Below, one piece after another: positions 2,201 to 60,714 of a stretch of DNA of 64,000 nt (position 1 is the stretch's first letter; each line of letters begins with the position of its first letter). Below the pieces are notes generated by a model. It was not told where the DNA came from and searched no databases. It worked only from the letters and a program-made list of their open reading frames with translations. Origin of the DNA: Eutreptiella sp. 'Long Island Sound 2002' (Eukaryota; Protista; Euglenida); contig OZ038378.1 of NCBI GenBank assembly GCA_964036045.1, positions 32,674,001 through 32,738,000 of the forward strand, in the 5' to 3' direction. A program made the position numbers and the translations under genes.

Positions 2201-2246
2201 GACGTTGGAGAATGATTCTCACCGGGAGGGTGCAGTCCCCGCGGCC

Positions 2247-34456: not shown

Positions 34457-36539
34457 CATTGCGCATGATTTCTAGATTTGTGTAATTACCATCTTTTGTG
34501 TTTTCCAAGGTGTTTCCCCGTTGATCCCCATTGATTTATGGCGGCTTCTCAATTTTCCCATGTTCCAAGCTCTCCCATTTTAGCCATTTTCATCTTTTGC
34601 GGCATAGCTCATTTTTACATACCTGTTTTTTTTATGTACCATTTTTTCTATTCCAGTTGCTCAGATTTTTTTCCTCCTTGAATTTCTCATCGCCCAGATC
34701 CATGGCACCTTCATTGTATTATTTTTATCAGGGGGGGGGGGCATCAAAATTGGGCCCACGCCCCCTCTTCCTACAAGCATCAGGCCCATACCTCACATCA
34801 AAGATCTTCTTGGATACACAACAAACAAAACACGCAACATGAGACATCAGACATCAAACCTTGTGCACAAACTTGCTTGCATGTACTTGTTGCTTTCTTA
34901 TACTTTTGGGTGGGGGAAGCGCTTGGAATGCGATGTGAACGGCATCGCACTGCAAAATATGCACTTCTGCTCTTGCTTTATGCCATTGTTGTTCTATCGT
35001 CATGCCCCGTGGTACCGGAAAAAAGGGGAGAAACACCTTCACCCATATCAAATCCAAAAAACAAAAGGCGTGCCGACTCAAACAAGAGATCACATGACTG
35101 GAGCTAGGCGCTCCTTACACGGTGGGACACAACTGCATGGAGGTGTCATGGGTGGTTGTCCGGTACCTCTGGGCTAACCGGGGTGCAACGCATCAACCAG
35201 TTAGTGCAATGCTACAAGGGCACCCACATAAAATTGGCAAAATGCCGCCCCAACGTGTAGGGAGCCACAAGGGTCTCCTCACTCAAAGGCTCATTGTGTT
35301 GCTCTTGCAAACCTTGGCATGCAATGATGAAACGACATGCAACACAATGGGCGGGTTGCATCAAAGGTTGGTTCAACCGCTCTTGCCTTGTCAGTTGCAA
35401 GTGGTCATGTGGCGCAGGTCGGGTTGCCCCTTTTGGCAGAGTTGCCTCAAGCAACAACTAGTTGCGCCGCAACGTAGTTGCACCTGTACTTGAGGCTACA
35501 CTGCTAGATTCGCCTCAATGGGTACCTTGGCAGGGGGCAACCATTCGCTGACAAGTGGTTTGGGCCCAATTGTTGCTTGAGGCAACACATATGGCCACAA
35601 GGCCACCACAATTTTGTTTTGATGCGCAAAGTGTAGAAGTGCTCCACTTAAGCAGTGGGACATTGAGTACCACCTTTACAAAAAGGCCACTTACCCATTG
35701 TTGGCAATGCACACACCAATGAGCAGGTGATCTGCCGCATCTCAGTGGCCTTCACAGTAGTTGGCCGCCCCCCTAGTGCCGCTATGCGGCCACCATCAAC
35801 ACCTACTTGGCGCACCTTCATCCGATGCCACAATGCACAAGTGGTCTCATGATAGTTTACACCAGGGCCCCCATCCTCACGTGTGGGTAGAGGGACATCA
35901 CACGTAGTGTACATCAGTCGTCACAATGCTGGGACACCATCCTCATGAACCACATCCAAATCGTAGGTTGCCATGAGTTCTGCCAACTTGTGCCACATTG
36001 TTGCCTCCACTTGAGGGATGGCTGTCCATCCCAACTATCCAATAGCCAGGAAAATCACGCCATATTTCAGTATGGCTTTCTCCAATACATTTTCCGGGTG
36101 CCAATCAGGAACCGGGTCCATTGCGAGGGTGTTGGACAACGTTCACGGTTTCAAAGCTTGCCAAGGTTTGCACGGTCCAGGAGTGTGTGCACTACGACGC
36201 TCCGAGAGCTCAGGGTAAGAGTCCATTGCTGGACCCCAGTGCTCGAAGTTGAACATGGGCTTGTCTTGAGGCTCAGCAGCCGGCTCATGGGGTGCGCCGC
36301 CGGAAGCACTCTGCTGGAACCCCCCCCCTTCCAGCACAATTGTGTAACACATCCTACTTTCCCATGCAAAAGTCGCTGCCTTCACCCAATGGACCCCCAA
36401 ATGGCTTGCACTATGACCCTCTTGCTGGTACAAATCTTGGGTGTTCGTGGTCACTGCGTCCTTGCGGAGCACTTGGGAACGCAAAAGGTGCTAGAAGTAG
36501 TGCTAGATCCCCCTTCTTGCGGGCTTCTTGCAACTTTTT

Positions 36540-36650
36540 AGGCCCCCTTCCAACGCTAGAACCCCCGCTGGAACCCCGTTCCAACGAACTCTTCCAGCGC
36601 TAGAAGGGGGTTCGAACGGGGGTTCCGGCGCCGGAACCCCCCCTTCCGGC
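36540..36650. repeat. GCTAGAACCCC / GGAACCCC / TTCCAGCG motif cluster
   Basis: ccttccaacgctagaacccccgctggaaccccgttccaacg...ggggttccggcgccggaacccccc; same family as 41510-41650 and 43120-43290. Confidence 0.7.
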
Positions 36651-37383
36651 ACACATGCCAACTTAACCAAATGGCGCACCACTGGCAAAAACACATTCCA
36701 TCTCAACTCATTTGTGCACCACAATGTCCTTGTACTTCAACGCCGTTGTCTTTTAAATAGTGCACGGCCCTTGCGCGCAATGTAGTGCCGCAAGCCAATT
36801 TGCATTGTCTCCATTTTAAGCACATGGCGCAAGCCACGTTTTGACACGCGTGGCTTTTGGAGCGACAATCCACGCGTGGAGTCTTTCACCTGCATCTTAA
36901 ATCGGCGGTGCCGGTGTTCGGCGGGTACACTGGAGAATAGATGTAAAGTGCGATGTTTGGGAGGGAAGCATTGGGAGTGGGCGACAATCCAATGGACCCA
37001 TGGGGTGGCCTTCCATCCCTATTTCACCCAACATGTGCCAATGCTTGCACACAAAGCTTTGGTAGAGGCCACCTCGACGTAGGTAAGAGGTTTTTTTTTA
37101 CAGCATAGTCTTTGAAGTGCACCAAAATCGGGCAAAAAAAACAGCAACGAGAACATACATACATACACCATTGCAAATAGTAGTTGGAAAGTGCGTCATG
37201 AGGGCTGACGTGAGCCGTTGTTGTAATGGGGGTCGGTCCCCAAAAGAGTGGGCCGTGCTGATATCAAATGTTCCCTCCTTTGCCTTTCGAGGGAGAAGGT
37301 CCTTTGACTCTGCCACTAGAACAAAGAGAGCCTGATGCAAAAGATCAGCCCAAATTTCATGAAATTCACGGGCAATGGCACGT

Positions 37384-40300
37384 CCCTAGGTACACGCTAG
37401 AACACCCAATCTCGTTCTAGGCTAGAACACTCTAGCCCAGATGTTCTAGCCTATGTTAGATACATCAAAACTAGAACGATATAATAGCCTGGGTAGAACA
37501 CAAAAAACAAATTATCACAAACACACACACACACACATAGGCACGCACACATTTTGACGCAGGCACGGGCACTGTGGGGCTGCCCTCCCTTCAAGCCCTT
37601 AGTTGGGGGGGTGGGCGCTTTGCTTTTGTCAAACATTTTGCAGGGGGGTCTGGAGAACTACCTTGGGGGGGGGGGGGTTGGACTCAGGGGTCTGGGAGGG
37701 TGTTCTTTTCTTTGTTTCACAGGTGCATTTTCATTCGATTTTCTGCTATTGGACTGACGAAATGCACTTTTGTAGTTGCACGTATGCCATGCAATGCTGT
37801 GCAGTGTTGTGGTGTGTTGTGGTCTCGTAAGGTGTAAAGTGGTGTGGTGTGCTATGTTGTAGTCTGTTGTGGTGTGTGATCTGCTATGGTGTGTTGTGCT
37901 GTGTAGCGACGTGGTGTGTTGTGTTGTGGTCTGATGAGGTGCGCTATGGTGAATTGCGATGTCATGTGGTGTGCTCTGGTGTCATGTGATGTGGCCTCGT
38001 GTCATGTGGTGTGGTGTGGTGTGGTGTGGTGTGCTGCGCAGCGGTGTGCTGTAGTGTGTGATTGGCTGTGGTGTGTTGTACTGTGTGGGGGGGTAGTGTG
38101 TTGTGGTCACATGACGTGCCTTGTGGTGTGCTGTGTTTTCATGTGGTGTGGTTGGTGGGGTTGGTTGAAAGGTGTGTTGGTTGCTCGGCAGGTTGGGTTG
38201 TTTGGCAGCTTCGGTTATTTCTGTGGAGTTTAGCCTCTGGCGGCATGCTGTGTGGTGTCTGCACCCTGTGGTGTGTGGTGTTGTATGCTGTTGTGTGCTC
38301 TGTAATGTCATGTCTCTGAGTACACATGTATTTGCTGCCATTCCAAGGGGAGGGGGGGGGGCTGGTAAGCGTTTAATATTTTTGTTCTAGCGGTGATCTA
38401 GCGATGCTCTAGCGGCCCGCTAGACCGCCGCTAGATCACGGCTAGAATGGTTCCCGCGAACGGCGCTAGAACAAAAACATTAACTGCTTGCCAGCCCCCC
38501 CCCCCTTCCCTTGGAATGGCAGCAAATACATGTGTACCCACAGACATGACATCACAGAGCACACAACCGCATACAACACCACACACCACAGGGCGGAGAC
38601 ACCACACAGCATGCCACAACCGGCTAAAAACCCAACAAATAACCGAAGCTGCCAAACAACCCAACCTACCAAGCAACCAACACACCATTCAACCAACCCC
38701 AGCAACCACACCACATGAAAACACAGCACACCACAGGGCACATCATGTGACCACAACACACTACCCCCCCGCATAGTACAACACACCATAGCACATCACA
38801 CACCACAAGAGACTACAACACACCACACCACACCGCTTTACACCTTACAAGACCACAGTATTGTCATATGGTGTGGTCGGGTGTCATGTGGTGTGGTCGA
38901 GTGTCATGTGGTGTGGTGTGGTGTGGTGTGGTATCGTGCAATAGGGTTGCCTCTGTGGTTGGTTGAAGGGTGTGTTGGTTGCTTGGCACGTTGGGTTGTT
39001 TGGCAGCTTGGGTTGTTTGTTGGGTGTTTGGCTGGTTGGGGCACGTTGTGTGGTGTGTGCACCCTGTGGTGTTAGGTGCCGTATGCTGTTGTGTGCTTTG
39101 TGATGTCGTGTCTATCGGTACAATGTAACTATTGCCATCCTAAGGGAGGGGGGGGGGGGCTGATAAGGAGTTACTATTGTTGTTCTAGCGGCGTTCGGCG
39201 GGACTGTTCTAGAGGTGATCTAGCGGGGTTCTGGCGGCCGCTAGAACGCCGCTAGATCACCGCTAGAACGCCTCGGTAGAACGCCGCTAGAACAAAAATA
39301 GTAACAGCTTATCAGCCCCCCCAGCCTCCCTTGGAATGGCAGTAGTAACATGGTACCAACAAACAAGACATCACAGAGCACACAACAGCATACGGCACCT
39401 AACACCACAGGGTGCAGACACCACACATCGTGCCCCAAACAGCCAAACAACCAACAAACAACCCAAGCTGCCAAACAACCCAACCTGCCCGGCAACCAAC
39501 ACACCCCTCAACCAACCACACAGGCAACCGTATCGCACGATATCCCACCAAACGACACAACACCACATGACACCAGACCACACCACATGACAGCCGACCA
39601 CACCACATGACAACACAGCACACCACAGGGCACGTCATGTGACCACAACACACTACCCCCCCCCCCCCGCACAGTACAGCACACCACAGCAGATCACACA
39701 CTACAGCAGACCGCAGCACACCACAGCACACCACACTACATGACACCACGTTACACGACCACAATACACCACAACACTGCACAGCATTGCATGGCATACC
39801 TGCAACTTCAAAAAGGCATTACGTCAGTCCAATAGCAGAAAAATCGAATAAAAATGCACCTGTGAAATAAAGAAAAGAACACCCTCCCTGACCCCTAAGT
39901 TCAACCCCCCCCCCAAGGTAGTTCTCAAGCCCCCCCCCCCAAAAAATATTTGACAAAAGCAAAGCGCCCACCCCCCCAATCAAGGGCTTGAAGGGAGGGC
40001 AGCCCCACAGTGCTTGTGCCTATGTCATAATGTGTGCGTGCATGTGTGTGTGTGTGTGTGTGTGTGTGCGCACATATGACTAGACATGTACCAAATGTCA
40101 TGGTCTCTATGTGTCTATGTGTCATGGAACCCCCCCCTTCCCACATTGGTGAATTTTTAATGCCAAATGTGTGTGTATGTTTTTGTTCTAGCGGCGTTCC
40201 AGCGAACCGTTCTAGCGACGTTCTAGCGCCGTTTTAGCGGGACGGCGCTAGAGCGCCGCTAGAAGGTTCCTAGAGCGGTTTTTTGTATTTGTTGAATTTC

Positions 40301-40492
40301 ATGTCAAAAATATGTTTTCCTGAAAATCAACGTATGGACCCCCAAGTATGGTAATGGGGGTCCGATTTGCACCCTTCATACGCCCGCCCCCCTATGCCCA
40401 TGGGTCGGTGTACCCCCCTCTTTTTTCCGCTCTACCCGCTCTAGCGCGTTCTAGGCTAGAACGAGATCGGGTGTTCTGGCGTGTACCAAGGG
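37384..40492. mobile_element. 3.1-kb non-autonomous CMC/EnSpm-like DNA transposon (element A) with internal foldback structure
   Basis: ~45-bp TIRs (CCCTAGGTACACGCTAGAACACCCAATCTCGTTCTAG; right-end reverse complement CCCTTGGTACACGCCAGAACACCCGATCTCGTTCTAG). TSD GT at 37382-83 and 40493-94. Subterminal GTTCTAGCG repeats; no transposase ORF. Confidence 0.9.
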
Positions 40493-41509
40493 GTTGGCCA
40501 ACTACCCCAACCAACCGCCGGGCAATATCATAAGACAATCGCTTCTTGAACGTGTTTGTCACACGGCAAGCACCATGGACCACGTCCCCTGCCCGACGGT
40601 CCGCCTTGATACTCCGCAAGAAGGAGCCCCGTCGAACATGTTCAAGGACATGGTTCAATGCACCTAAAAGAGAAACATCGTCACAACACCAACATTTCCA
40701 CATCCGTTCGTTACGGCCATCAACTTGCCATCCGCACAGAGCAACACCACGAAACACCAAGACTCGCCATCACTGAAAACCGTGGTGTCCCTCTGCAACA
40801 CAACCACTTGTTCATTGAGTTGGCCTATGTCGTCCACAACTAGGAGACACCCAGCATCATCTAGCCGGTCCATGCACCACCACATTGCCCAACCGGCAAT
40901 GTGTTCAACAGCTTTCACGCCCTCCCGCCAAACATGGACAAACACATCCGCTTTTGACACACTAGTTTTCCACAACGGAGTTGCATAGGGCACCACAACC
41001 ACCCACATGCATTTTTCAGTCCCATTATGTTTATCATTCCCCTCGGCCATTGCGAGTTGAACTTGGTTTACCAGAACGTCTTCAACTGCGTCACAGGTGC
41101 ACTCCTCTGGTGCATGAACCCCCCACTAACGGTCAGTGTTCCCGCCGTGTACGGTGTCAAGCGGGTCCGCGTGTCGAGAAGGTCGCGTTGCGTGAAATTG
41201 TGCGGCAACCTCAACGTTTGCCGGATTGAGAGGTTGGCCTCCACAACGTACTTCCATGAAAGAAATGCAGCCCGAGGGGCCGAGCTATCCTCCCCCTCAA
41301 CTCCCATGCTGCTACAGATGAAAAGCCCATCCGGAGTTCCTTCAACTAGGGGCGTGCCCTCCATGAGAAGAGCCACTAGGACTGTGGCGATGTGCACCCC
41401 CCTCTCATGTCGTGCACGGTCCTTAAGTTGCAATAGGCCGCTTGGGGGGGCAGTGCTTTCCTAAATGCTGCCACAGCCTTGTCCATATGACACACTTAGA
41501 GACCAAGAA

Positions 41510-41650
41510 TAGCCGCTAGAACCATCGCCGGAACCCCTGTTGGAACCCCCTTCCAGCGCTGGAACAACCCCTTCTAGCGATGGAACCCCCCCTCCTTCTA
41601 GCGCTAGAATCCCCCCCCCCCTCCAACGGTGGAACCCCCTTCCAACCACC
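41510..41650. repeat. GCTAGAA/GGAACCCC motif cluster between dioxygenase 2 and SF2-like copy 2
   Basis: ccgctagaaccatcgccggaacccctgttggaacccccttccagcgctggaac...ttctagcgctagaat. Confidence 0.75.
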
Positions 41651-41836
41651 TTTCCAACGGTGACAAGTACTACCACCTCATGCATCATTTACAAGCAATT
41701 ACAATGGTCCGTGTCCCCTTGCACGCTTTGCACGAAGAAGTTTTTTGGGTGTCTTTTTTGGCATCAATCAGTCCGCATCTGAAATGCCCCACATGTGGCA
41801 CAATGCATAACGTACGATACATATCGACACGCTCAC

Positions 41837-42830
41837 TCAGAGGAGGCAAACATTCTTCACTTGGGCTTCTCCAAAATAGAGAGGTACTTGTTGGACCGGT
41901 CCTTCTCTTCCTCCCATTTCTCTCGCGTGTGCTTCAATTCGCCCTGTACCTCTAGCTTCTGCCTTTTGGTGCCCTCCAGTGTCTCCTAGATTTGGCACAT
42001 GGATTTGGCACAGTGGGACCTTCTGGCGCATGAAGCATATGGGCAGGGGCTGTGCGACCTTCTTGCGGCATCCCTTGCGCCCACATTTCTCCGTCGATGT
42101 TGGTATTTGCGCTTCGGCATACGCGCACGCTGGGGGGGGAATCGGCACGGTGTTGTTGTAGTGCAAATTGTAATTGGCGAGAGAGATGAAGGCAACGACT
42201 CGAGGAGTGCCTGCAGCTAGTCCAACCGGAACGGCTGCGCCACAGTGGATCAACTCCGATGTGAAGACGACCAAATCTCCAACATACATGTCAAGCGGGT
42301 ACTCGTACCAAGGCATTGGCAACCCCTCACGGGACAAGGGCAAATATGAACCACGAGAGCCATCAGCGGGAATATCCACGTGCCAGGGCACAAATACGCA
42401 GAGGGCTTTGCCTTGAGTCTTGTGTGTCAAAGGGCGATCCCGGTGCCAATGTTGCCTCCTATCTTTGGTTGCACGGATATAGCCGGCCCGGACAACCACA
42501 ACATCCTAAAAGTCCTTCACTTTTGGCAGCTCCCACTGAACCTCGTTCGCAAGGGCGTCCCAGGCCGGCAGCTCCATCCCCTCTTGATCAGGTAGTGGCA
42601 ATCCGAAGCAGCTATAGCAAGCACTTCGGCCACGGCTGTCTCCTTGATGACCTAGAGCCGGCACATCGTCGAAGAAGGACCCCCACTTGTGACCCAGACT
42701 GGTGATGCACTTGTCCTTGGTGGCGTTGTGGACCGGGGAGTCGGCAAAGATACCACGGTAGCGGCAAAGCCCAAAGTTTACAATGGTATTAAAAAATGGG
42801 TATGTGGGGGTTTTGGTCCATAACGTCCAT
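41837..42830 (-). pseudogene. 2OG-Fe(II) dioxygenase (PhyH-like) fused to a C-terminal Cys/His zinc finger; one in-frame TAG
   Basis: NFGLCRYRGIF N-motif; QHWHRD (HxD ~42445); LCVFVPW; YVGDLVVFTSELIHCG (distal His ~42247); TPRVVAF (2OG-binding Arg); then CGRKGC...ICFMR...LCQIH. Same frame continues upstream across a TAG at ~42506. Confidence 0.85.
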
Positions 42831-43119
42831 GATTAATCGCTCACCACACGGGGGGCACGATCACGCATGATGCACCTCCTCACTTGGACACGACCATAAG
42901 TGTTGGTGCGCTTGAAAAAAAACTGCAGCACCGGTGGTTTGAGCTGTGAGGGCTTCAAGTTCACAACCCAGAGGGGCTCAATATCCACGACTCCCCACAA
43001 GGGCATTGGCCTTGTCAAGCCATGATGCAAGAACGGGAAAATTCGAGGGGTTCATGATCAAGGTGACAAGGTGGCACAATACTGCGTGCAAGGTGTGCAG
43101 AGGGCAGCGAACGTGGAGG

Positions 43120-43290
43120 TAGAACAAGCCCTCGAACCCGGGCTGGAACCCTGCTAGAACCCGCTTCCAGCGCTGAAAACCCTGCTAGAACCCTCGCTAG
43201 ATCCCCCTTCAAGTGCTTGAACCCCCCCCTTCTAGCGCCGAAACCCCCTTCCAGCGAAGTGCTGAAAGGAATTCCAGCAGGGGTTCCAAG
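43120..43290. repeat. GCTAGAACCC/TTCCAGCG motif cluster upstream of dioxygenase 2
   Basis: ggctggaaccctgctagaacccgcttccagcgctgaaaaccctgctagaaccctcgctagat...ttctagcgccgaaacccccttccagcg. Confidence 0.75.
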
Positions 43291-44519
43291 ACTTTTGTAC
43301 CCATCTTAAATCAAGTAAGCGGGCAATGGTACACCTTGTTTCTTGCACCAACAAACACTAGGAACAACATACTTTTTCACTGTGGGGGCGTGACGTGGTA
43401 GCCATCACGAACCGAGTTTCCAAGAAAGGGGGGGGGGGGGGTTGCAGCGGAGCGCTTCCAGGGGCACACCCCGCACTAGAGCCGTTGTCGGAAAGTTTGG
43501 GTCCGAACCGCTATGGCTCATACCACAAAAGGATTGTTGCGGCTCAAGGGCACACACATATCTGAAGTGGGGTTTGTGTCACAGGTGCTAGCACCATGAC
43601 AACCAACAAACTGATCTGTCTCCAGAGTCAGTTTTGGAGATTTCGAGCCGCGATGCAAAAAATGCACAGTTAAAGCTTAACAATAAACGAAAAAATTGAA
43701 AAAGGTCGCCAAAAAATTTACCTTTTCCCCGCACCATGCCGTAAACCTATTTTGTTGCAAATTTTGTTGGTGAAAGACGTCGTGGTGTGCGAGGAGGATG
43801 TCCGTCCCATGCGTGTCGCGAGGAGCAACAAGGATGGGGAGAAGAGGGTGGGATCATGGGGCCTATGCAAGCTCATCGCTTGAGACTACCTGCTTGGGTT
43901 GGTCGTCCTTTGCGCCCTGAGGGAGTGGGAGCAGGGCCGCATGTGCTCCGAGTTGTGGGGCCCATCAAGGCAATGTATTCGCACCCAATGGGGACACATT
44001 GCGGAGGTGGGGTGGTTTGGGTGTGAGGATGGAAGGATTAGGAGGGAGATGGGAGCTGGGGAGGCAAAAGTGGTGAAGAACAAAAGAGAGGCGGGATGCA
44101 CCACCACCACCCCCAACCCCCCCCCCTCCGAGCCCAAGAACCCCCCCCCCCCCCCAAAAAAAAAGGCCACCTGGAAGAGGAGGAGGTGGGAGTTGGGGTC
44201 GGACAACAACTGCGACCACCCCGCTTCCTCCTTCTCGTCCTCCTCCGGCAAGGACTCCCCCCCACACAAAAAGGCAGAGTGCGGTCTGGATCACAAGCGC
44301 ACGTGTGGCTCAAGGGCACACAAAAATGACAAATGCCGTTAGGGACACAAGCGCGGAGACACCGACCACAAACCAAGTGTTGTACGTCAAGGTGAAAAAA
44401 GAGGAGGGGGCCTTCCGAGTTGGTTGCACTAGGGAGCCAATAGCAAAGCAACTCTTGTGCCTCACAGGCACAACAATCGTGAGGCACATTTGTCCCGCGA
44501 CATTGGAGAGGTAAGCACT

Positions 44520-47500
44520 GCAGTGATGTCCCACATGTTATACACCATGGTACATATCACCGAGCGTGTGTACAATTGAATTCAAGGGCTGCGGTGATAC
44601 CCCACACCTCGTACACCATGATACATATCACGGCCTGTCATGTAGACATAGTTCCAGGGGCTGCAGTGATATCCCGGATGTTGTAAAGTATGATACATAT
44701 CACCGCTAGTCATGTAGACATGGTTTCAGGGGTTGCGGTGATCTTATAGACCTCTGCATTGTGTTACATATAACAGCTGGCTGTTGGGACATGGTTTGAG
44801 AGGCTGTGATGATCTCCAAAACCTACTGAACATCGTATCATATCACTGCTAGTCAGGTAAACATGGTTTCACGGCCTAGAGTCTCTCCCACAAATTGCAA
44901 AGCATGTTACACATTGGAGATCGCCCTGGAGACATGGTTTGAGAGGCCGGGGTGATATCCCACACCTCCCGCACAATGTTGCATATTATTGGTGGCAATG
45001 TACACTTGATTTCGGGGTGTATGGGATATCCCGCACCTCCTAAATTGTGTCACCATCAGTGCTAGTCTTCGAGACATGGTTTGAGTGGCCCCGGTGATAC
45101 CCCACACCTTGTACACCATGTTACATATCACCGCTAGCCACGTAGACATGGTTTTGGGGCCTACGGTGATCTCCCCCACCTTTTGTACCATGTTACATAT
45201 TAGCGCTAGTCATGGAGACATTGTTGGAGACGTTGCGGTGACCTCCCACATCTTGCACACCATGTTACATATCACCCCTAGTCATGAAAACATGGCTTGC
45301 GGGGTTGTGGTGATCTCCTACACCTCCTACACCATGTTACATTTTCGCGCTAGTCTTCGAGACGTCATTTCAGAGGCTATGATGATATCCCACCCCTTGT
45401 ACAGCATGTTACATATCAACGCTGGCCGGGTAGACATTAGTTTACGGGCTGCCAGTGTCTCCCACACCTTGTACACCATCTGACATATGACCGCTAGCCC
45501 TGGAGACATAGTTTGAGAGGCTGCGGTGATATCCCCCACCTCTTGGACCATGTTGCATATCACCAAAGGTGATTTCAACACGGTTTTAGGAGCCACCGTG
45601 ATCCCATATACCTTGTATGCCATCTTACATATCATTGCCGGCCTTGGAGATTGGGTTTGAGACAGTGCGGTGATATCCCACATGTTGTACACCATGTTAC
45701 ATGTCACCGTTGAAGATGAAGACTTGGTTTGAGAGGCTCCGGTGATATGCCACACGTTGTACACCACGCTACAAATAACCGCTAGCCATGTACACGTGGT
45801 GTCAAGGGTTGCGGTGACCTGGCACACCTTGTACACGATGTTGCATATCACCACTAGCCATGTAGATATGGCATGCGATGATCTCCTACACCTTGTACGC
45901 CATGTTGCATACAACTGTTCCCCATGTAAAGTTGATTTGAGGTCCTGCCATAAGCTTCCAAACCTCCTACACCAAGTCAATATCACCGTTTGCCATGTAG
46001 ACATGATTTTAGGGGTTTGTGGATCTCCAAGACTCTGCACACCGTGTTACATGTCGCCGATGGCAATGTAGACATGGCTTCCTGTGGTGCAGTGGTACTC
46101 CACACCTCGTAAAGGCCGTTACATACCACCGCCAGTCATATAGACTGAATTTTAGGGGCCGCGGTGGTATCCCACACCTCCTGCACCATGTTGCATATCC
46201 CTGTTGCTCATGTACATTGGAAGTCACGGGACGTAGTGATATCCCACACATCCTACACCATTTTGTGTGTCCCCGCTGGTCATGTAGAGTTGATTTCAGG
46301 GGCTACGCCGATCTGCCAAACGTACTACACCATATTACATATTGCTGCGGTCCATGTGCACGTGGTATTATGGCCTACGGTGATGTCCCACAGCTTGTAC
46401 ACCATGTTGCAAATTACCTTTGGCCATGTAAACATGGTTTCACGCAATGCAATGGTATTCCACACCTCCTACACCTTGGTACATATCACCATCGGTCATG
46501 TAGACTGGATTTCACGGGCCGCGGTGACCTCCCATACCATATACCCCATGTCGCATATTACCGCTTGCCATGAAGGAACAAGTTCAGTGGCTGCGGTGAC
46601 ATACCACACCTCCCGCACCAAGTTGCATATTGCTATTAGTCGTGTGCATCTGAATTTACGGGATGTGGTGATACCACACCTCTGGCACCATGTTACGTAT
46701 CCTCTGTGGTCATGTACACTTGGGTTCCGGGGCCGCATTGACCTCCCATACCTTGTGCCCCATGGTGCATACTACGGTGGGCCATGTAGGCATGGTTTCA
46801 GTGGCTGCGGTGATATCCCACACCTCCTTCACCATGTTGCATATTGCTGTTGGTCATGTACACTTGATTTCACTACATGCAGCGATCGTCCACACCTCCT
46901 ACAGCATGCTAGATATCGCCGTTATCCATTTACACATGCTATCAGGGGCTGCGGTGATGTCCCACACCTTGTACCCCATGTTGCATATCCCCGCTGGCCA
47001 TGCAGACATGCTTTCGGGGGCCGCGGCGATCTCCTACAGCTTGCATACAATGTTACATGTCACTGCCGGTCATGTACAGATGGATGGAGCGGCTGCGGTG
47101 ATGCAGCAAACCTCTTGCAGTGTGTCACATCTCACCGCTAGGTGTGGGGACATTGTTGAAGAGGGTACGTGGATATCCCACCCCTGGTATACAACGTTAC
47201 ATATCACCGGTGGTCATATAGACTGGATTTCACGGACTCCGATGATATCGCAAACGTCTTGCAGCATGTTGCATACCACCATGCACTCCTCATGTAGACT
47301 TGGTCGCAGCAGCTGTGGTGATCTCCCATACCTCTGACACCATGCTACATATCCTCCCTGGTCATGTAGACTTGATTTTTGGGGCTGCGGTGACCTCCCA
47401 CACCTTGTACGCCATGTTGCATATCATTCGTAGCCATGTAGGCATGGTTTCGGGGGCTGCGGTGATACCCGACACCTCGGGCACCATGTTGCATATCATT

Positions 47501-48550
47501 GTTGGTCATTTACTTTTGATGCGGTGATATCCTACTTCTCCTACAAAGTGTCACATATGCCCCCTGGTCAAGCAGACTTTTTTTGAGGGGGCACGTTATT
47601 TTCCCATAGCCCTTACACTATATTACATATCAACGCTTTCCATGCACACATGGTATGAGGGGTTGCAGTGATATCGCACACCTTGTACAGGATGTTGTTC
47701 ACCATCATTGGTAATGTAAGCATGGTTTCCGGGGCTGCAATAATATCCCACGGGGTGTATACAATGTTACATTTCACGGCTGCTCATGTACACATGGTTT
47801 GAGCGGCCGCGGTGATGTCCTACACACCCTACACTATGTCACATATCACCGCTAGGCCTGGAGACATGGCTGAAGATGCTGCGGTGATATACCACACGAC
47901 GTGCACCATGTTACATATCACCGCTGGTGCTTGCCGATAGTTAGACAGGTGGCGGTGATATGCTACACCTCCTACACCATATCACACATCACTGCTAATC
48001 ATGTAGACATGCTTTGAGGGACTAGGATGATATCCCACACCTCCTGCGGCATCTTGCATGTCACCACCGTTTGTCATGTGCACTTTGTTGTAGGGGCTGC
48101 AGTGATTCCCCACACCTTGTACACCATGTTTCATAACACCGCTGCAATCAAAGACACGGTTTGAGAGGCGGCAGTGATATCCCACACCTTGTGCACCATG
48201 GTACATACCACCGCTAGCAATGTGCACTTCCTTGCGGGGTGCAAAGTCATCTCACATGTCCTACACGGTGTGATGCATATCACTGCTGGGCCTGGGGACA
48301 CGGTTTAAGAGGATGAGGTGCTGCACCACACGTGATACGATATGTTACATATCACCGCCGTCCACGGAAAGATGGCTTCCCGGTCTGCGGTGATGTCCCG
48401 CACCTTTTACACCATTTTACATAGCAACCATACTATCGTTGACATGGTATCAAGGGCTGTGGTGATGTCCCAAACATTCTACACCATGTTACATATCCCC
48501 ACTGGTCATGTAGACATTGCCTCCGGGGCTGCAGTGATATCCCACATCTG
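44520..48550 (+). repeat. 72-bp satellite, left array (~56 units)
   Basis: GC[G/A]GTGAT at 44591, 44663 and 44735. Unit GGGCTGCGGTGATATCCCACACCTTGTACACCATGTTACATATCACCGCTAGTCATGTAGACATGGTTTCAG contains inverted GCGGTGATAT/ATATCACCGC. Confidence 0.95.
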
Positions 48551-49966
48551 TTGGTGATTGCACCTACCCATGAACAAGTGGATGACTTGTTGCAACTGGT
48601 GCTTGAAGAGTGTATGATCAACCAGGTGTTGCATGAGGAGGTGCTTGTACAACATTTGGCACGCCAATTGCGCCTACGTGACCAACGGGCTATTGCCCCA
48701 CTAACACCGAGGTCATTCGACCATGACAAGGTGCATGAGACCTTGGGGAACAGTCGTGATTGTAAGCGTACCGTGGCTTGGGCTCTCAATAGCTCCCGTA
48801 TGTTGTCTGCGAAAGCTGATGACTGCTAGCCATTAGTGCTTCTTAGGGCCTCCACGCAAAAGGCACAAACGGAATTTTCATTCGGCTTTTTAGATGAGGC
48901 GTCGAGGTGCAGCATTGCTGTGGGATGGGACTTGGCTGCCACGGGGAGCCAATGCCTCTTGTGTGGTGATCGCGGTCAAATGCAACTACGTAGCCACATA
49001 CATCTTTTGCCTGTTGGGAAGGTTACCGAGGATCTACTGCCAAAGGATCGTGCATGGTCATTAGCTGCATACTTCAACTGAATATTTCAAAACTCCCGCC
49101 AAATCGCATTTATTGATTCCCAACACCTCTACACAACTAACACACTGCATTGATTCCTCTACAACACCCGATGCTGTGCTACTGTCGTGGCACAGCAATA
49201 CCGCATGAAATTGCCGCGAGCTACAATTGTGCATGCCTTGTTCATAGGAAGGGGGAGGGGGCATTACATCATTACCACTCAACCACCCACCCCCTCGCTA
49301 AGCCGGTGCTGGATAATCTCATCCGCATCGCAGATCCAGACATGCCCCAATGGCAACTGCAACTTGTGGAGGCTTTGGGGAAAGCATCCCTTGTTGACCT
49401 TCGCCAACTGCTAATAGAGGCATGGGACAGCCTCCAGGTTGATGAGGTACTATCCTCAAGTCACAACACGACTCACTAGGATGTGTTGCCTGTGCGCCAT
49501 TATCTAGAGGTGGCAACCTCAAAAGGGACATATGCAAAGAGGTCTGCAGTTGTGGTGACCACACATTATGGCCAGAAGGTCTCGCTCCGGCATTGTTTGT
49601 GCTTGTAGGCAACTAGGTGCAATGTATTGGTTATCCTATCTTGCACGTAGTTGCTACCCTTGAGCTGGTCCAAGGGCTACAACCCCAAATCATCTGGGTG
49701 TCATTGGTGTTTCAGGTTCCGAGGATGATGACTCATTTCTACGGGGAGAACACACCTAGTAGCAAGCAGCATTTGAGCTCCACTTGTTGGGCCGCTTCAA
49801 CCAATGGCGTGCCCACCCCACCTCTAAGGAATGGGTCAACACACTCACTGCTATCCAGTGGGAAGCTGGCCAACCCACAATCATGCAAACACTCGAGTTG
49901 GCTTGGGTCTTGCGGCAAGCTAGAATCATCCCTTATGTGGTAGAAGGGACAATCTACCGGTTCTAG
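48551..49966 (+). pseudogene. UPF1/DNA2-like SF1B helicase, 5'-truncated and fragmented
   Basis: Ordered motifs: VIAPTHEQVDDLL (Ia), FGFLDEASRC (II), LLCGDRGQM (III), QQYRM (IV, ~49196), AVVVTTHYGQ, VATLELVQG..IIWVSLV (V), FL...LHLLGRF (VI region). Walker A not found. Confidence 0.85.
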
Positions 49967-50384
49967 GGGGCGGTTGTGGGATCCTAGTTGTGCAAGCCTC
50001 AGAAGAATTCCGAGAAAGCACGTGGCCATGCTCGTGCCGTGAGTGACAAGGTATTGCACTGGGAATGGATCATGGCAGACAGTGGGTCCAAGAGGTTGTA
50101 AATGCTCATGACAGATCTTAGGAGCCAACCTTTTGGCCCCTGAGCACTTGGGGGTTACCTTGTAAGATTTCACACAATGGGCATTGCCCTATGTGATCTT
50201 GGAGGATCATAGAAATGACATGAATCTTGGGAACTAGGGTGGGTCGGTTAGCGTGGGCCACAAAAGTGACGTTCCTCATTTGCAAAGCACACTCCTGAAC
50301 CACCTTGTGCACTAAAGAAGAAGGAGTATATGCATCAAGGCATGTGCAGAACCATGGATCTCACTCTTTGGAGGGAGGCATACA

Positions 50385-51375
50385 CGCGATGATATGTACC
50401 ATGTTGTACGCGGTGTTGGACATCATCACCTTCCCTTATAACCTTACGTACATGGCTAGTGGTGATTTGTAACATGGTGTGAGAGGTATGGGGTATCATG
50501 GCAACCTCTTAAATGAAGTAGACATGGGCAACAATCATATATAACATTGTGTAGGAAGTGTGGAATATCTCCGCGGCCGGTCAAATCAAGTGCACATGAC
50601 CAACGGTGATGTTTAACATGGCGCAAGAGATGCGGAATGTAATCGCAGCCGATGAAACGAACTCTACATGACCACTGGTGATTTGTGACATGGTGTAAGA
50701 AGTGTGTGATATGACCAGAGCCCTTGAAATCAACTCTACGTGAGCGGCGGTGGCATTGAAAATGGTGTAGGAGGTGTCGAATATCACCGCAGCTCCTCAA
50801 ACCATTGTGTATATGGCGAGCACTGATGTGCAACATGCTGCGAGGTGTGGCATATCAATTGGCATATCAACCCTGACCATATCATTTTGAGGCCCTGAAA
50901 TCAATTCTACAAATGCGATGATGATATGTAACATGTTGTACAAAGTGTGGGATACCACCGCTGCCCCGGAAGTCTAATCTACATGCGCAATGGTGATATA
51001 TTACATGGTGTAAGAGGTATGGGAGATCACCGTAGTTCCTCAAATCCACTCTCCACGGACAGCGATGATATGTAACATGGCTTACGACGTGTATTATCAC
51101 TGACCCATCTAAAACCATGTCTCCGGGACCAGCAGTAATATGTAATATGGCGAAGGACGTGTGGGATACCACCCCAGCTCCTAATACCATGTGCACATGG
51201 CTAGTGGTGATATTTCACATGGTTTACAAGGTATGGGATATCACTGCTACCAATGAATTCAAAACTATATTACCAAGGCCGATATGTAACATGGTGTAGG
51301 ACATGTGCAGCATCAACGCATCCCCTAAACCCATGTCCAGATGGCCAACGGTAATAAGTAGCATTGTGTAGGAGG
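50385..51375 (-). repeat. 72-bp satellite, right array in inverted orientation (~13-14 units)
   Basis: Reverse-complement units, e.g. ggtgatatgtaacatggtgtaggag...gggatatcaccgcagc. Confidence 0.9.
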
Positions 51376-51399
51376 CAGGAACAGGGTTCACAATCACAA

Positions 51400-52020
51400 C
51401 TTGGGCCTCCTAGTGTCTTGCCCACATTGACAGTGCGAACATTCACAAGAAACGGGTACTAGGGGGGCATGTAGCCTTGTTGCCACAACACACCTTTGAT
51501 ACATGCCACCAATGTCTCTCAATTCCCTGTCCTAGCACCTCCCGTAAGCGGTGTGATACACGATTCGTCCAGCACTTCGGACATCCAAAAGCTTGAAAGG
51601 TTTTAGGCTGCAGCGTTGTACTAGCTGCTGAAGGAACTCCTGGTCGCAATTTGACAATGAAGGCTGGTCAATAGGTGGCGGCCGAATGTTTGCCAGCAAT
51701 GTGGACCATGCTTTGCCTTTTTGGATTTGGTTCCGCAAATTGCGATAAGGATGGCACTCAAGGACAACCATGTACTAGTACATGCCCTCCACAGGGCCTG
51801 TGGTATTGCATGCAGCAAAGATCGAAACATGGGCATCAGAGATGCCACCACCATGCGAGTTTGCGTTGAAGTCTAGTTTCCCCCACTCTGGTAAAATGTC
51901 GTGCAATCCATGAACCTTGTTACCATCACCCCCCTCATAGTTACCACACACTCCCAATTGTGAGGCCCGCTGCCGGAGGTGCCTCACGGCTGCTATCAAG
52001 CTTGTCAACTTCCTTCTACC
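51400..52020 (-). pseudogene. Tyrosine-recombinase-like remnant (DIRS/Crypton-type catalytic domain)
   Basis: KLTSLIAAVRHLRQRASQL (box I R-x-S-x-L), ECHPYRNLRNQI (CPV-like), FLQQLVQRCSLKPFKLLDVRSAG (HxxR-like, His replaced), ELRDIGG (GxW-like). Two in-frame stops; catalytic Lys and Tyr not evident. Confidence 0.5.
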
Positions 52021-52379
52021 ATTCTTGGACTCGCAAGTGTGCGGAGGAAAAGGTTTGCGGGGAGCGGGGGGCGTTCGAGCCCCTTTTCTAGACTCCGCCG
52101 CCCGGGTTGGCTCCCGTGACAAGCCGCTAACAACAAACCATGCCCCCCCGCCCCACCCCCAGTAAGAGGGGTTCCATGATGGGGACCTCCAAATAACCCC
52201 CCCCCCCCCCCGGAGGGGGGGCTCACGTGACAAAATGCTGAAAATCACCCCCTTATCCCTCCCCCCTTACTGGCAACATTGGTGGTATTGTTCATTTTAT
52301 GTCCTGACAATTCCGGCTGCATCTCATCCCACAAAATTTTTATCGGGCGGCTCACCACCTTGGCCTCTTGTTGGCGCTT

Positions 52380-54656: not shown

Positions 54657-57600
54657 CCTATGGGGCCACTGGAGACCTATGGGGGCCAACGGGAACCTGT
54701 GCGGGTCTATGGGCACCCATGGGAGCCTATCAGGGGGGACGGAGACGTATATCAACCTATGGGGACCTATGTGACCCTATGAAAACCTATGGGGACCTGT
54801 TGGCACGCACCGGGACCTTTGGGTACCGGTTGGAACCTACGGGGACCTATGGGACCTATGGGGGCCTTTGGGGACCTTTGGAGACCTATTGGGGACTATG
54901 GAGACCTATGGGCACCTATGGGGACCCATGGGGGCCCGTGGGGAGCTTTGGGGACCTATGAGGGCCTTTGGGGACCTATGGGGACCTATGAGGTCCTTTG
55001 GGGACCTATGAGGACCTAAAGGGACGTATGGGGGCCTATGGAATACTTTGGTGACCTATAACGTCTATGGAGACGTATGTGGACTTATGGGGGACTATGG
55101 TGACCTATGGGAGCTATAGGGACCTACGGGGACGCATTGGCACCTATGAGGACCTAAAGGGACGTATGGGGGCCTATGGGATACTTTGGTGACCTATAAC
55201 GTCTATGGGGACCTATAGGGACCTATGAGGGCCTATGGGGACCTATGGGGACATATGGAAACCTATCCGGAGCTTTGGGGACCTATAGGGTCCTATGGGG
55301 ACCTATTGGCACCTTTGGTGGCCTATGAGGATTTATGGAGCCCTATGGGAACCAATGGGGAACCTTGGGCGCCTATGAAGACCTATAGGGACCTGTGGCG
55401 ACCTATGGGGACCTACGGGGACCTATGGCAGCCTATGGGGTCCTTTGGGGGCCTTTGTGGACCTCTGGGGACCTATGGGGACCTACGGGGAACTTTGGGG
55501 ACCTATGGGGACCATTGGAGACATATGGAGGCCTACAGGGACCTTTGGAGGCCTATGGGGACCTATGGGGGCCTATCGGGGCCTATGGGGTCCTATGGGA
55601 TCCTATGGGGACCCCTTGGCACCTATGGGGACCTTTGGAAACCCATTGCCACTTATGGGGAGCTATGGGTACCTGTGGGGGTCTATGGGGACCTTTGGAG
55701 ACCTATGGGGGCCTATGGGGACCCATGGGGATCTATGGGGATCTAGTGGCATCTGTGGGGACTTTTGGACACCTATGGGGATTTATGGGGGCCTATGAGG
55801 GCCTATGGGGACCTATGGAGACCTATGGGGACCTTTGCAGATATTTTGGTACCAATGGGGGCCTATCAGGACCAAAGGAGACCTATGGGGACCGATGGGG
55901 AGATTGGAGTGGCCGGGTTTTCGTTTCCGTGGGGGGGGGGGGGTCGATAGAGCCCTCCGGCCAGACCCCCCCCTCCCCCCAAAAGGGCTCAATTGAAAGG
56001 ACCCCCGAAATCCTACTGATACTAAGCCCTGGGCGACGGAGGTAACCCAAACCAAAAAGCGAGAAGAAAAAAAAGAAAGTGGCATTCTTGGAATCATCGC
56101 GTCCAGGGGGGAGAGAAAACTCATCATTTAGCATATATTTGGTGAAAAAAAATCGAGCAATTTCAAAGCTCCAAAAAATTTGCAGCGCCTTGGGGGCCAG
56201 ACATCATAATGATGGATTAATGGTCCGTGTCAATGGAGGCCTTTTCCCAACCCGCCCCCCCCCCGGTTTTGGGGGGTCTATTGACCTCCCCCCCCCGGAA
56301 GTGAAAACCCGACATGCCCTGGAGACCTATGGGGGCCTATGGGGACTTCTGGGGGTCCGTGGGGACCTCTGGAGGGCCTATGAGGGCCTATGGGGACCTA
56401 TGGGAACCTATGGGGACCTATGGGAACCCATTGGCACATACCGGGACCTATTGGCATATATGGGCACCTATGGGGACCTATGGGGGCCCATGGGCAGCTT
56501 TGGGGACCTATGGGGGCCTTTAGGGCCCTATGGGGACCTAGGGAGGCCTATGGGATACGTTGGTAACCTATCAAGTCCATGGGGACCAATGGCAACTGAT
56601 TGGGGCCTATGTGGACCTATGGCAACCTATGGGGACCTACGGAAACCTATTGGCACCTATGGAGAGCTACGAGGGCCTAACGGGACCTATTGGAAACTAG
56701 GGAAACCTATGGGGAGCCTTTGGCACCTACGGGGACCTGCGGGGACCTATGGGGACCTATGGGAAGTTCTGAGGACCTATGGAAACCTATGCGCACCTTT
56801 GGTGGCCTATGCACACCTAGGGGGACATGTGGGGTCCTTTGGCGGCATGTGGGGACCTTAAGGGAAATTTGGGACCTATGGAGGCCTATGGGTACCTTTG
56901 GGAGCCTCTGGGGACCTATGGGGGCCTCTCGGGGCCTATGGTGACCTATGGGAACCTATGGGGACCCAGTGGCACCTATGGAGACCTTTAGAAACCCGTT
57001 GGCACGTACGGGGACCAATGGGGACCTATGGGGGCCTATGGGGACCAATGGGGTATGTGGGACGCCATTGGGGACCAATGGGGACCTATGGGGGGCTATG
57101 GGGCCACTACAGACCTATGGGGGCCTGTGGGGACCTATGGGGGCCGACGGGAACCTATGGGGACCCATTGGCACCTATGGGGACATTTGGGCATCGCTTG
57201 GCACCTACATGGACATGTGCGGACCTATGGGTGGCCTATTGAGACCTTTGGAGACATATGGGGGCCTATGGGGACCTATGGGGAGCTACCTGGGGAAATG
57301 GTGGCCCATATGGGGACTTTTGGGCACCTTTAGCCACCTACGGGGGGCTATGAAGGCCTATGGGGAGCTATGGGGGCCTATGGGGACCTATGGGGACCTA
57401 TGGGGTCACTGGAGACCTATTGGGGCCTATTGGAACCTATGAGGGCCTTTGGGGACCTATGTGAGCCTACCAGGGCCTATGGGGTTCTATGGGAACCTAT
57501 GGGAACGTATCGGGACCTATGGGAACCTATGGGGACCCATTGGCACCTATGGGGACCTTTGGGGATCTGTTGGCACCTACAGGGATCTACGGGGACCTAT

Positions 57601-60110: not shown

Positions 60111-60714
60111 CTGGGTTTGACTTCTTGTCGGGCATGGGGATGTAGCCTCCTGTTGTCACCCGGTTTGGCGGCCACTCGTCGGTGGGGTGTTCCTTGTCCG
60201 CCATAGGCTGCTCCGGGTGTAAGGCCCCCCTCACGGGTGACCATCGCCTTCACAGGCGACCACCTGGGTGGCGCCAGCCCAATCGATGAGAAAGTTTGAA
60301 CAAGCTTTCACTGTTGATGCTCTTGATGATATTGTTTTGTTTTGTGCTCCTGCTTGCTCCTGTTGCTTCTTGATGTAGCTCAAGTTTTCCAAATGTCAAT
60401 GTTTTGGTAAAATGAAATGATGGACCACAGCTCCCAAGTACTCACAGTGCAATAAGAGGAAATTCAGGATCAAATCCACAACATGAAGGGCTGCAGTCAA
60501 TGGGGAAAAGCTAGACAATGTATCTACACAAAGGAACTCACAATAACTACAGATTTAGAAAAGATAGTTAGAAAACTGCCCACATGGGCACTCTCTCTTT
60601 TATAGTGTCATCTTGAGATGTGCACTCTTTGTTTTGGGTCCCATAGGTGCTGAGGTGGCATGGCTTGTGGCGCTGAAGTCACTGCCATGTCACATGGGAA
60701 CTTCCTATTTAGCT

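Follow-up and report, generated by a model that had tools for sequence, protein, structure and literature searches.

A dead DNA transposon with a dioxygenase-zinc finger gene and a predicted RAG1-like transposase, very probably unrelated to the helicase-satellite repeat that adjoins it in Eutreptiella

RAG1 evolved from a Transib-like transposase, and for this reason fold diversity outside animals bears on the origin of the V(D)J recombinase. Transib is one of the members of the CMCT clade, which comprises EnSpm/CACTA, Mirage, Chapaev, Transib, Plavaka and ESTA, together with Lanisha (PMC12730594). Transposons of this clade display C(2)C and H(3–4)H motifs, target duplications of 2–5 bp and, in most cases, termini of the form 5'-CA...TG-3' (PMC12730594). 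A second relevant group is the fungal transposons that carry TET/JBP genes. These include Kyakuja/Dileera/Zisupton, EnSpm, ESTA, Plavaka and others; the role proposed for the TET/JBP proteins is escape from methylation-based silencing, and the genes hop between unrelated superfamilies (PMC12730594). No described eukaryotic transposon carrying a PhyH gene was found in the literature, nor was anything relevant on Transib in dinoflagellates.

The window is the whole 64,000-nt stretch of Eutreptiella DNA that was analyzed. The genome has a CpG ratio of 0.56, which is compatible with a methylating host, a G+C content of about 53% and abundant satellites. Broken genes in the window were searched piece by piece, and exons or frames were never joined. 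The 20 largest window ORF pieces gave no match in Pfam, searches of PDB sequences with window pieces returned only chance zinc-finger-like matches, and no Rfam family was found in the whole window.

The region at 35–52 kb very probably consists of two unrelated repeats side by side, a dead cut-and-paste DNA transposon and a broken SF1 helicase/satellite repeat. A sequence-only reading had described it as a single large unit with four genes, encoding a YR-like recombinase, a UPF1-like helicase, a dioxygenase-zinc finger and an SF2-like protein. The dioxygenase-zinc finger and the SF1 helicase are real, while the "SF2-like" and "YR-like" genes were misread. There is a mobile DNA element with its own 2OG-Fe(II) dioxygenase-zinc finger, as proposed, but the large four-gene unit does not hold.

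The transposon is at positions 36288–43473 on the minus strand. It is an old, decayed copy of an approximately 6.8-kb CMCT-type cut-and-paste element, as determined by blastn to young copies and by the presence of both inverted repeats. Identity to the young copies (L003:8587-15376, L006:5247-12143, L007 and L005) is 72–79% by blastn. Within this assembly, intact relatives measure 6.8 kb and share 93–97% identity among themselves. The window copy is 7.2 kb, not the 17 kb of the claimed giant cargo element, and carries a single foreign sequence of about 3.1 kb nested within it, together with internal deletions. No part of the transposon is found below position 36288 in the window. The 5' terminal inverted repeat (element orientation) is at 43440–43473 on the minus strand and the 3' repeat, read inward, is at 36288–36321 on the plus strand. 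These match a 34-nt probe from L003 with four and three errors, respectively. Inverted repeats of intact copies are about 45 bp and start TGGGGTGCGCCGCT; the termini are 5'-TGGGG...CCCCA-3' in all copies, with the inverted-repeat start TGGGGTGCG. The flanking sequence shows a 2-bp target-site duplication, CA, at 36286–36287 (left) and 43474–43475 (right). Thus both inverted repeats and a CA/CA duplication are present at a locus where no termini had been recognized. The 2-bp flanks match in all five complete copies, i.e., GG in L003, TG in L005, TA in L006, CA in the window and TG in L014.

A motif family had been noticed that punctuates the two left-hand genes. It proves to be the 13-nt core of the inverted repeat, which is repeated inside the element. 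The window has 22 matches to the core compared with 4.7 expected, a number reached by no shuffle, and 16 of the 22 are inside 36288–43473. Young copies carry 25–27 cores each, compared with 0–1 in about 14 kb of flanks. In young copies the cores occupy the ends and the sequence beside them, and they also form two internal clusters where genes adjoin. The same clusters are present in the window copy: an internal one at 41539–41640 (plus strand), which separates the remnants of ORF2 and of the transposase, and further clusters at 43142–43227 and 36555–36642.

The intact transposon has three genes on one strand, which encode a PhyH-type dioxygenase-zinc finger protein (ORF1), a low-complexity coiled-coil protein (ORF2) and a 546-aa transposase. 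The window ORF1 remnant, consisting of an N-terminal region, a PhyH-type 2OG-Fe(II) dioxygenase and a Cys/His finger, is merged with the tail of ORF2 by an internal deletion, and the two together are at 41840–43065 (minus strand). The remnant is broken by one in-frame stop, one frame change and internal deletions. The reported dioxygenase-zinc finger at about 41840–42832 (minus strand) is supported by 11 paralogues with 64–78% identity and by relatives that score above the PhyH cut-off. Scores with Pfam PhyH (PF05721) are modest (25–30 bits, curated cut-off 22 bits), i.e., 29.7 bits for L003, 27.9 for L009 across the whole profile and 25.4 for L005, and the window copy itself falls short of E 0.01 in Pfam. 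PhyH is the only family Pfam reports for these relatives, with no TET/JBP match. A profile of the decayed copies matched no solved dioxygenase in PDB and gave one 18-residue match (E 0.6). The H-x-D motif is kept in all eight copies that cover the position; of 11 copies, seven retain the distal H and nine the R. The window copy keeps HxD...H...R. The dioxygenase domain is followed by an eight-ligand Cys/His cluster, C-x4-C-x10-C-x2-C-x5-C-x2-H-x4-C-x2-C. The intact form of ORF1 is uncertain, because a single frame is present in only four of the eight copies examined and one of these four has an in-frame stop. A second dioxygenase and a second SF2-like copy had been reported nearby; searches with 11 diverse family members as queries revealed neither a second dioxygenase nor a second copy of the family elsewhere in the window.

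The third gene is represented in the window by a remnant at 36740–41486 (minus strand), located by tblastn with protein P0057, whose predicted fold is that of a RAG1/Transib DDE transposase. The remnant has 399 of 546 residues recoverable with 71% identity, and it is broken by at least two in-frame stops, at least three frame changes and one nested insertion. This stretch had been read as an SF2-like helicase gene at 41300–35000. Neither the window pieces nor the intact relatives show a helicase family in Pfam, and structure prediction points instead to a transposase with a RAG1-like fold. The model of P0057, built from a 23-sequence alignment, has a pLDDT of 84.9 and a pTM of 0.81. All 49 Foldseek hits with this model at E ≤ 1e-3 are RAG1, BbRAGL or HzTransib. 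The best have an E value of 1e-10 and TM scores of 0.55–0.59 across about 580–660 columns; the next fold is P element transposase at E 0.02. A poorer earlier model of the transposase ranked the folds identically.

A comparison of the 23 transposase sequences shows that D181, D253 and E487 are invariant and D168 nearly so. The elements D253, C266-x2-C269, H462-x4-H467 and E487 are found in that order and are invariant or at least 90% conserved. The CxxC is 13 residues past D253. The Hx4H is 20 residues ahead of E487, a spacing that presumably equals that of H942 to E962 in RAG1; the label E962Q is present in PDB titles of the Foldseek hits. This spacing suggests that the D/D/E residues may correspond to the catalytic residues of RAG1. 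The evidence for a transposase consists of the predicted structure and the motif spacing. At the sequence level, Pfam (RAG1 and the CACTA families, including Transposase_21/24) gave no relevant hit for the 23 members. Transposase profiles searched against PDB sequences did not retrieve RAG1/Transib at E ≤ 1 or, in a second search, at E ≤ 10; profile A1 gave a single chance match, a chemoreceptor at E 0.04, and profile A2 gave none. Mobilization by a tyrosine recombinase had been proposed, whereas the element appears from its model to encode a DDE transposase of the RAG1/Transib fold.

From position 44518 to approximately 51770 the sequence belongs to another, very abundant repeat, here in a broken copy, in which an SF1 helicase gene is followed by a satellite array. 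The helicase pseudogene (UPF1/DNA2-like, AAA_11 and AAA_12) is at 48548–51767 and has at least 12 in-frame stops, at least one frame change and one inversion. The UPF1-like helicase of the earlier reading is confirmed as a heavily broken SF1 remnant at 48548–50170. It is 41–46% identical to relatives that score above the Pfam cut-offs for AAA_11 (46.7 bits) and AAA_12 (34.4 bits), domains recognized in L011 and L007; the window pieces have no Pfam hit and are recognizable only via relatives. A degenerate 72-bp satellite array at 44518–48540 (plus strand) lies beyond the transposon and is interpreted as the internal satellite belonging to the helicase repeat. A second 72-bp satellite block, at 50386–51360 within the range of the pseudogene, is inverted, with 52 inverted alignments and no direct ones. 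The two helicase pieces in the window lie on opposite strands and cover complementary parts of a single ORF. A single inversion reversed part of the helicase gene together with part of the array.

The YR-like gene placed at 52020–51400 shows no recombinase signal, and positions 51360–51767 show homology to the helicase ORF in its N-terminal part. The apparent separate "recombinase" on the opposite strand was produced by the inversion, which flipped this N-terminal part. The sole ORF piece reaching 90 aa in the claimed stretch (51778–52266) has no Pfam hit, hence none to a tyrosine recombinase or integrase, nor did better-preserved helicase repeats reveal such a domain. The helicase-satellite architecture resembles that of L010 and L011, whose helicase is followed by a 52-bp array; the helicase belongs to its own repeat, which is at least 9–12 kb long and includes this array. 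The upstream ORFs in L010 and L011 have no Pfam hit. The family represents at least 100 sequence clusters, all from ENA assemblies, whose contigs range in length from 13 kb to 7.8 Mb, and the three copies whose contigs were examined are all from the assembly of the window. A Helitron was also considered and rejected, as there is no Rep (HUH) signal and the helicase is of the AAA_11/AAA_12 type and not Pif1.

The transposon and the helicase repeat might be associated without being one element, e.g., by insertion preference or joint segmental duplication. The helicase repeat adjoins the transposon in two of eight loci, and L007 contains, in three copies whose junctions are identical, a block that joins the 3' part of the transposon to the beginning of the helicase repeat. 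However, the L007 pattern is accounted for by local segmental duplication, chance adjacency is plausible with a helicase family of this abundance, and both orientation and side differ between the two adjoining cases. Such an association is improbable. Less probable still is the original proposal that the region is the remains of one giant cargo-carrying or endogenous virus-like unit mobilized by a YR. All four stretches are repeat-derived and are inside 17 kb, and in L007 the helicase repeat is again close, about 230 bp past the 3' end of the transposon. Yet no helicase is present within 10 kb of the transposon at six of its eight loci, the transposon is missing from two helicase loci, and in the window and L007 the helicase is on opposite sides of the transposon. 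The dioxygenase and transposase are enclosed by their own inverted repeats and target duplications, there is no recombinase domain, the "YR" stretch being the helicase N-terminus, and a scan of viral contigs found no relative. The genes recur elsewhere independently with their own ends, in place of the conserved four-gene neighbourhood that had been suggested. No giant 17-kb element, tyrosine recombinase or virus-like unit is present in the 35–52 kb region.

Two unrelated adjoining repeats thus remain the preferred reading, and the linkage that does persist is within the transposon. The dioxygenase-zinc finger and the transposase are linked in three diverged lineages: the main family, L014 and L009. 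L014 is from the same genome; its transposase is 47–48% identical and its ORF1 30% identical (E 5e-31) to the main family. It has the gene order of the main family, shares the first 14 nt of the inverted repeat and shows a TG/TG duplication. L009 is from another sample, with a transposase 35% identical to the main family and a PhyH-ZnF ORF that is 29% identical across 381 residues (E 1e-30). Its gene order is reversed, transposase then dioxygenase, and differs from that of the other two lineages. The family comprises 796 representative proteins and has no Pfam model. A metagenome scan with alignment A1 found no relative, and one with P0039 found two short contigs only. It is highly improbable that the 546-aa and PhyH-ZnF proteins represent a host multigene family of domesticated RAG1-like genes, even with several copies keeping an intact transposase ORF and relatives on short contigs from many other samples, since copies at unrelated sites have inverted repeats at their borders and 2-bp duplications, one cluster holds 34 members > 90% identical, and many copies are decayed or internally deleted.

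The conserved linkage suggests that the dioxygenase-finger protein may be an obligate partner of the transposase and not casual cargo. The transposase would bind the repeated core motif and then pair both ends. By analogy with its structural relatives it may cut by nick-and-hairpin chemistry, and insertion would have a 2-bp stagger. Two functions can be proposed for the partner. It may be a DNA-binding accessory factor for the end-adjacent repeats, like TnpA of CACTA. Alternatively, the predicted dioxygenase may oxidize DNA or chromatin at the element and thereby evade silencing.

Taken together, these properties may represent an unnamed lineage of the RAG1/Transib fold with 2-bp duplications, TG...CA ends, an array of end-derived motifs and an obligate PhyH-ZnF partner that is conserved over deep divergence, widespread in uncharacterized eukaryotes (the 796 representative proteins) and absent from Pfam. 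This broad interpretation is tentative and stands somewhat below an even chance. If it is correct, a RAG1-like enzyme works with a partner that modifies DNA or chromatin where RAG1 has RAG2. The family itself displays the predicted RAG1-core fold with a different cutting stagger (2 bp), different ends and a different partner protein. It also extends the transposon-borne 2OG-dioxygenases from fungal TET/JBP to a second family, PhyH, in another, CpG-depleted eukaryote, and provides a locus at which data on base modification and expression could reveal whether transposon dioxygenases counter silencing. For annotation, about 800 representative proteins without a Pfam model are easily misread, here as a helicase.

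A comparison with known systems begins with the helicase. Like UPF1/DNA2-like SF1B helicases, relatives of the window remnant pass AAA_11 and AAA_12, but here the gene is part of a high-copy, mostly decayed repeat with a satellite array and is not a single host gene. Within the CACTA/Mirage/Chapaev/Transib clade, the transposon apparently represents an unnamed lineage whose PhyH-type partner gene is conserved. It shares with CMCT elements the CxxC/Hx4H layout, the similarity to RAG1, a duplication within the 2–5 bp range (2 bp in all five complete copies), several genes per element and, as in CACTA, end-adjacent repeated motifs. It differs in that the ends are TG...CA and not CA...TG, the accessory gene is a PhyH-type dioxygenase, and there is no sequence-level match to Pfam CACTA or RAG1. 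Compared with EnSpm/CACTA, only the end-adjacent repeats are alike; there are no CACTA termini, 3-bp duplication or Transposase_21/24. The comparison with Mirage, whose target duplication is 2 bp, covers the length of the duplication, likewise 2 bp here. ESTA has TA duplications, whereas those found here are GG, TG, TA, CA and TG. The predicted fold matches Transib, RAG1 and ProtoRAG (6pqx, 6b40, 4wwx, 6cg0) over the whole length, with TM scores of 0.50–0.59 and E values of 1e-7 to 1e-10. However, the duplication is 2 bp and not 5 bp, the termini are without a CAC-heptamer (RSS-like), and a dioxygenase-zinc-finger protein is present instead of a RAG2-like partner. As in the TET/JBP transposons, which include CMCT lineages, a 2OG-Fe(II) dioxygenase is carried within the inverted repeats of a DNA transposon. 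Here the dioxygenase is PhyH and is fused to a Cys/His finger, and in contrast to the hopping of the fungal genes, its linkage persists across transposases that are only 35–48% identical.

Window positions 41840–42505 on the minus strand contain a 222-aa ORF, read previously as a dioxygenase. A word search shows 11 paralogues with 64–78% identity, one of which has a weak PhyH match. Comparison by blastn of the 10-kb flanks of four paralogues with the window reveals a shared unit that covers roughly 36.29–43.47 kb; these flanks have no similarity to the window at 48–52 kb. The repeated unit is thus far smaller than the 17 kb that had been proposed. Younger copies of this unit, a transposon, were found via its downstream 546-aa ORF. 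They are 93–97% identical to each other and their similarity ends sharply (L003:8587–15376, L006:5247–12143 and, in L007, at position 12101); another young copy, L005:7484–12101, is internally deleted. The transposon ends are inverted repeats of approximately 45 bp that start with TGGGGTGCGCCGCT. Identical dinucleotides are present on both sides of the complete copies in L003, L005 and L006, i.e., GG, TG and TA, respectively. The sequence-only reading had found no termini, but the window copy (36288–43473, minus strand) has both inverted repeats, with 3 and 4 errors per 34 nt, and is flanked by CA on the left and right. A fifth complete copy, L014:1921–11875, is from a diverged family; its first 14 nt are the same and its flanks are TG/TG. 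The 2-bp flanks match in all five complete copies, with a chance probability of ~1e-6.

The window copy is 72–79% identical to the young copies. In the transposase remnant (36740–41486), 399 of the 546 residues are recoverable, and there are at least two in-frame stops, at least three frame changes and one nested insertion, a palindromic minisatellite of ~3.1 kb. The remnant of ORF1, the dioxygenase-finger gene, contains one stop and one frame change; it is further shortened by internal deletions, to which most of ORF2 has been lost as well. Two long palindromes are adjacent to each other, one with arms at 38000–38361 and 38496–38857 (87% complementary), the other with arms at 38858–39158 and 39316–39616 (89% complementary). 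Both are composed of a GTGGT/ACCAC-rich minisatellite. This foldback-like block, 38000–39616, is foreign DNA nested within the transposon copy.

By tblastx, window segments 48540–50204 (plus) and 51360–51879 (minus) align with neighbouring stretches of a single L007 ORF that complement each other. Relatives of this ORF pass the AAA_11 (46.7 bits) and AAA_12 (34.4 bits) profiles, which agrees with the proposed UPF1-like helicase, here an SF1 remnant. The minus-strand segment had been considered a YR-like recombinase gene; it represents part of the helicase ORF instead, and no recombinase domain is found in the window pieces or in the better helicase copies. The helicase family comprises at least 100 clusters, every one of which comes from ENA assemblies; their contigs range from 13 kb to 7.8 Mb. 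Contigs were fetched for three copies, all from the assembly of the window. The repeat in L010, L011 and L007 is at least 9–12 kb and has the helicase gene with a 52-bp tandem array directly downstream (L011:12979–15979, L010:13404 onward and L007:18464–21488). Since the 52-bp array is present in every better-preserved copy and the window copy has a 72-bp array instead, the internal satellite of this repeat class seems to vary. The helicase remnant in the window displays at least 12 stops, at least one frame change and one strand switch, and the satellite block that separates its two pieces runs exclusively in the opposite orientation to the main 72-bp array. The simplest reading is that the window from 44518 to about 51770 represents one copy of the helicase-plus-satellite repeat, broken by a single inversion.

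Linkage between transposon and helicase was assessed at eight transposon loci (the window and L001–L007), with the helicase sought within 10 kb. It is present at two of the eight, the window and L007, on opposite sides of the transposon, and the helicase repeat is found without the transposon in L010 and L011. A single giant element carrying a recombinase, the helicase, the dioxygenase-zinc finger gene and an SF2-like gene is therefore refuted by the criterion that had been set for it; in the loci examined the transposon genes and the helicase occur independently and share no conserved neighbourhood. In L007 there is a local segmental triplication (528–5434 and 10384–15033), whose block joins the 3' part of the transposon to the beginning of the helicase repeat across ~230 bp, with identical junctions and flanks. 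L006 has a called gene of 57 aa (1218–1391) with weak PHD-finger matches, ~4 kb upstream of the young transposon copy and outside its inverted repeats. It recalls the PHD gene described earlier near the supposed giant element; no link to the transposon is seen at this locus.

The window is eukaryote-like in character, with a G+C content of ~53%, a CpG observed/expected ratio of 0.56 and fragmented ORFs, and pieces of these ORFs give no matches in Pfam or among solved structures. It is full of degenerate satellites, among them the 72-bp array, which reaches from 44518 to 48223 and further, and a 10-bp array spanning 54.7–60.1 kb. The latter is very long (54657–60113, unit ACCTATGGGG, more than 450 units), has an inverted block at 59830–60111, and is also present in L002:2114–2797 and L005:16091–17163. 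The ORFs at 2037–6090 (plus) read as those of a non-LTR (LINE-type) retrotransposon, with an N-terminal endonuclease-like ORF and a YMDD-bearing ORF at 3426–4490; Pfam shows nothing at E <= 0.01. They are probably what had been termed element A. The ORF at 8414–9259 (minus) has an H-x-D ... H pattern and is possibly the second dioxygenase of the sequence-only reading; it gives no Pfam match and does not resemble the PhyH-ZnF family. A second SF2-like copy had also been placed nearby, but neither the transposase nor the dioxygenase family has a further copy elsewhere in the window. The window's own proteins and most contigs of the fetched relatives belong to the ENA long-read assembly ERZ25074135 (contigs of 0.1 to several Mb, coverage 34–45x), which is not regarded as human.

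Each young copy contains 25–27 occurrences of a 13-nt core of the inverted repeats, which lie at its ends, adjoining these and in two internal clusters; ~14 kb of flanking sequence has 0–1. A related 13-mer has 22 matches in the window, versus 4.7 expected, and 16 of the 22 are within the transposon. This is the motif family that had been seen to punctuate the two left-hand genes. CACTA transposons have repeats that adjoin their ends, and by this analogy the core motifs are putative binding sites for the transposase or an accessory protein. ORF2 is partly coded by an internal motif cluster (L003:10662–11402 and the matching parts of L006 and L007); it yields a repetitive peptide rich in Gly, Arg, Phe and Gln, with a coiled-coil tail behind it. 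ORF2 is either a real ORF or arises incidentally from the motif array.

The proposed dioxygenase-zinc finger gene is confirmed in the better copies of ORF1, which score 29.7, 27.9 and 25.4 bits against Pfam PhyH (curated cut-off, 22 bits). All eight copies that cover the H-x-D site retain it. The distal His is conserved in 7 of 11 copies and the Arg in 9 of 11, and the window copy is among those with these residues. A Cys/His cluster, C-x4-C-x10-C-x2-C-x5-C-x2-H-x4-C-x2-C, follows the dioxygenase domain and is not recognized by Pfam. The transposase of L014, from the same genome, is 47–48% identical to that of the main family. Upstream of it, within the inverted repeats of L014 itself, are an ORF1 homologue (30% identity, E 5e-31) and an ORF2 homologue in the same gene order. 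L009 is a contig of 4.8 kb that comes from a different sample (ERZ27267618). It encodes a transposase with 35% identity, and after it a 529-aa ORF. This ORF covers the PhyH profile from end to end, and its alignment with ORF1 extends over 381 residues, including the finger (29% identity, E 1e-30). Maintenance of this linkage across the divergence between the main family, L014 and L009 suggests that the dioxygenase gene is an integral partner and not a recently acquired cargo. In fungal TET/JBP transposons a dioxygenase is proposed to counter methylation-based silencing (PMC12730594), and the dioxygenase-finger protein may act similarly; binding to the repeated end motifs is an equally open putative role. 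The young copies L003:9027–10582 and L006:5685–7009, ~94% identical, have a frame change in ORF1 in common, with a first piece of 325 aa in each, whereas in older copies ORF1 continues in a single frame. This could be a defect inherited from the source copy or an unrecognized short intron.

The 546-aa protein (P0057, equivalent to L003:13276–14916) has no matches to Pfam or PDB sequences. At E <= 1e-3, an exhaustive profile search with its family gives 796 representative relatives, all of them unnamed. An AlphaFold model based on an alignment of 23 diverse relatives has a pLDDT of 84.9 and a pTM of 0.81. Foldseek comparison with the PDB at E <= 1e-3 shows solely the RAG1 core, amphioxus RAG-like and Helicoverpa Transib transposases. 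For the best match, which spans almost the whole length, E is 1e-10 and TM 0.55–0.59; the next fold is the P element transposase (E 0.02). A poorer first model produced the same outcome. By its modeled fold, the supposed SF2-like helicase gene is a RAG1-fold transposase.

The 23-relative alignment has invariant or near-invariant columns at D168/D181, D253, C266-x2-C269, H462-x4-H467 and E487, with the Glu 20 residues after the second His. RAG1 has the same spacing between H942 and E962; the label E962Q is found in PDB titles among the Foldseek matches. The CACTA/Mirage/Chapaev/Transib (CMCT) clade is defined by a DDE + C(2)C + H(3-4)H signature (PMC12730594, a 2025 paper), and this signature is present in the 546-aa transposase. 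The transposon differs from Transib proper, which has a 5-bp duplication and a CAC heptamer, from CACTA, with CACTA ends and a 3-bp duplication, and from ESTA, with a TA duplication. The TG...CA ends that it carries are unusual within the CMCT clade. It is therefore placed as a CMCT-type transposon of an apparently unnamed lineage, set apart from Transib, CACTA and ESTA by the features of each.
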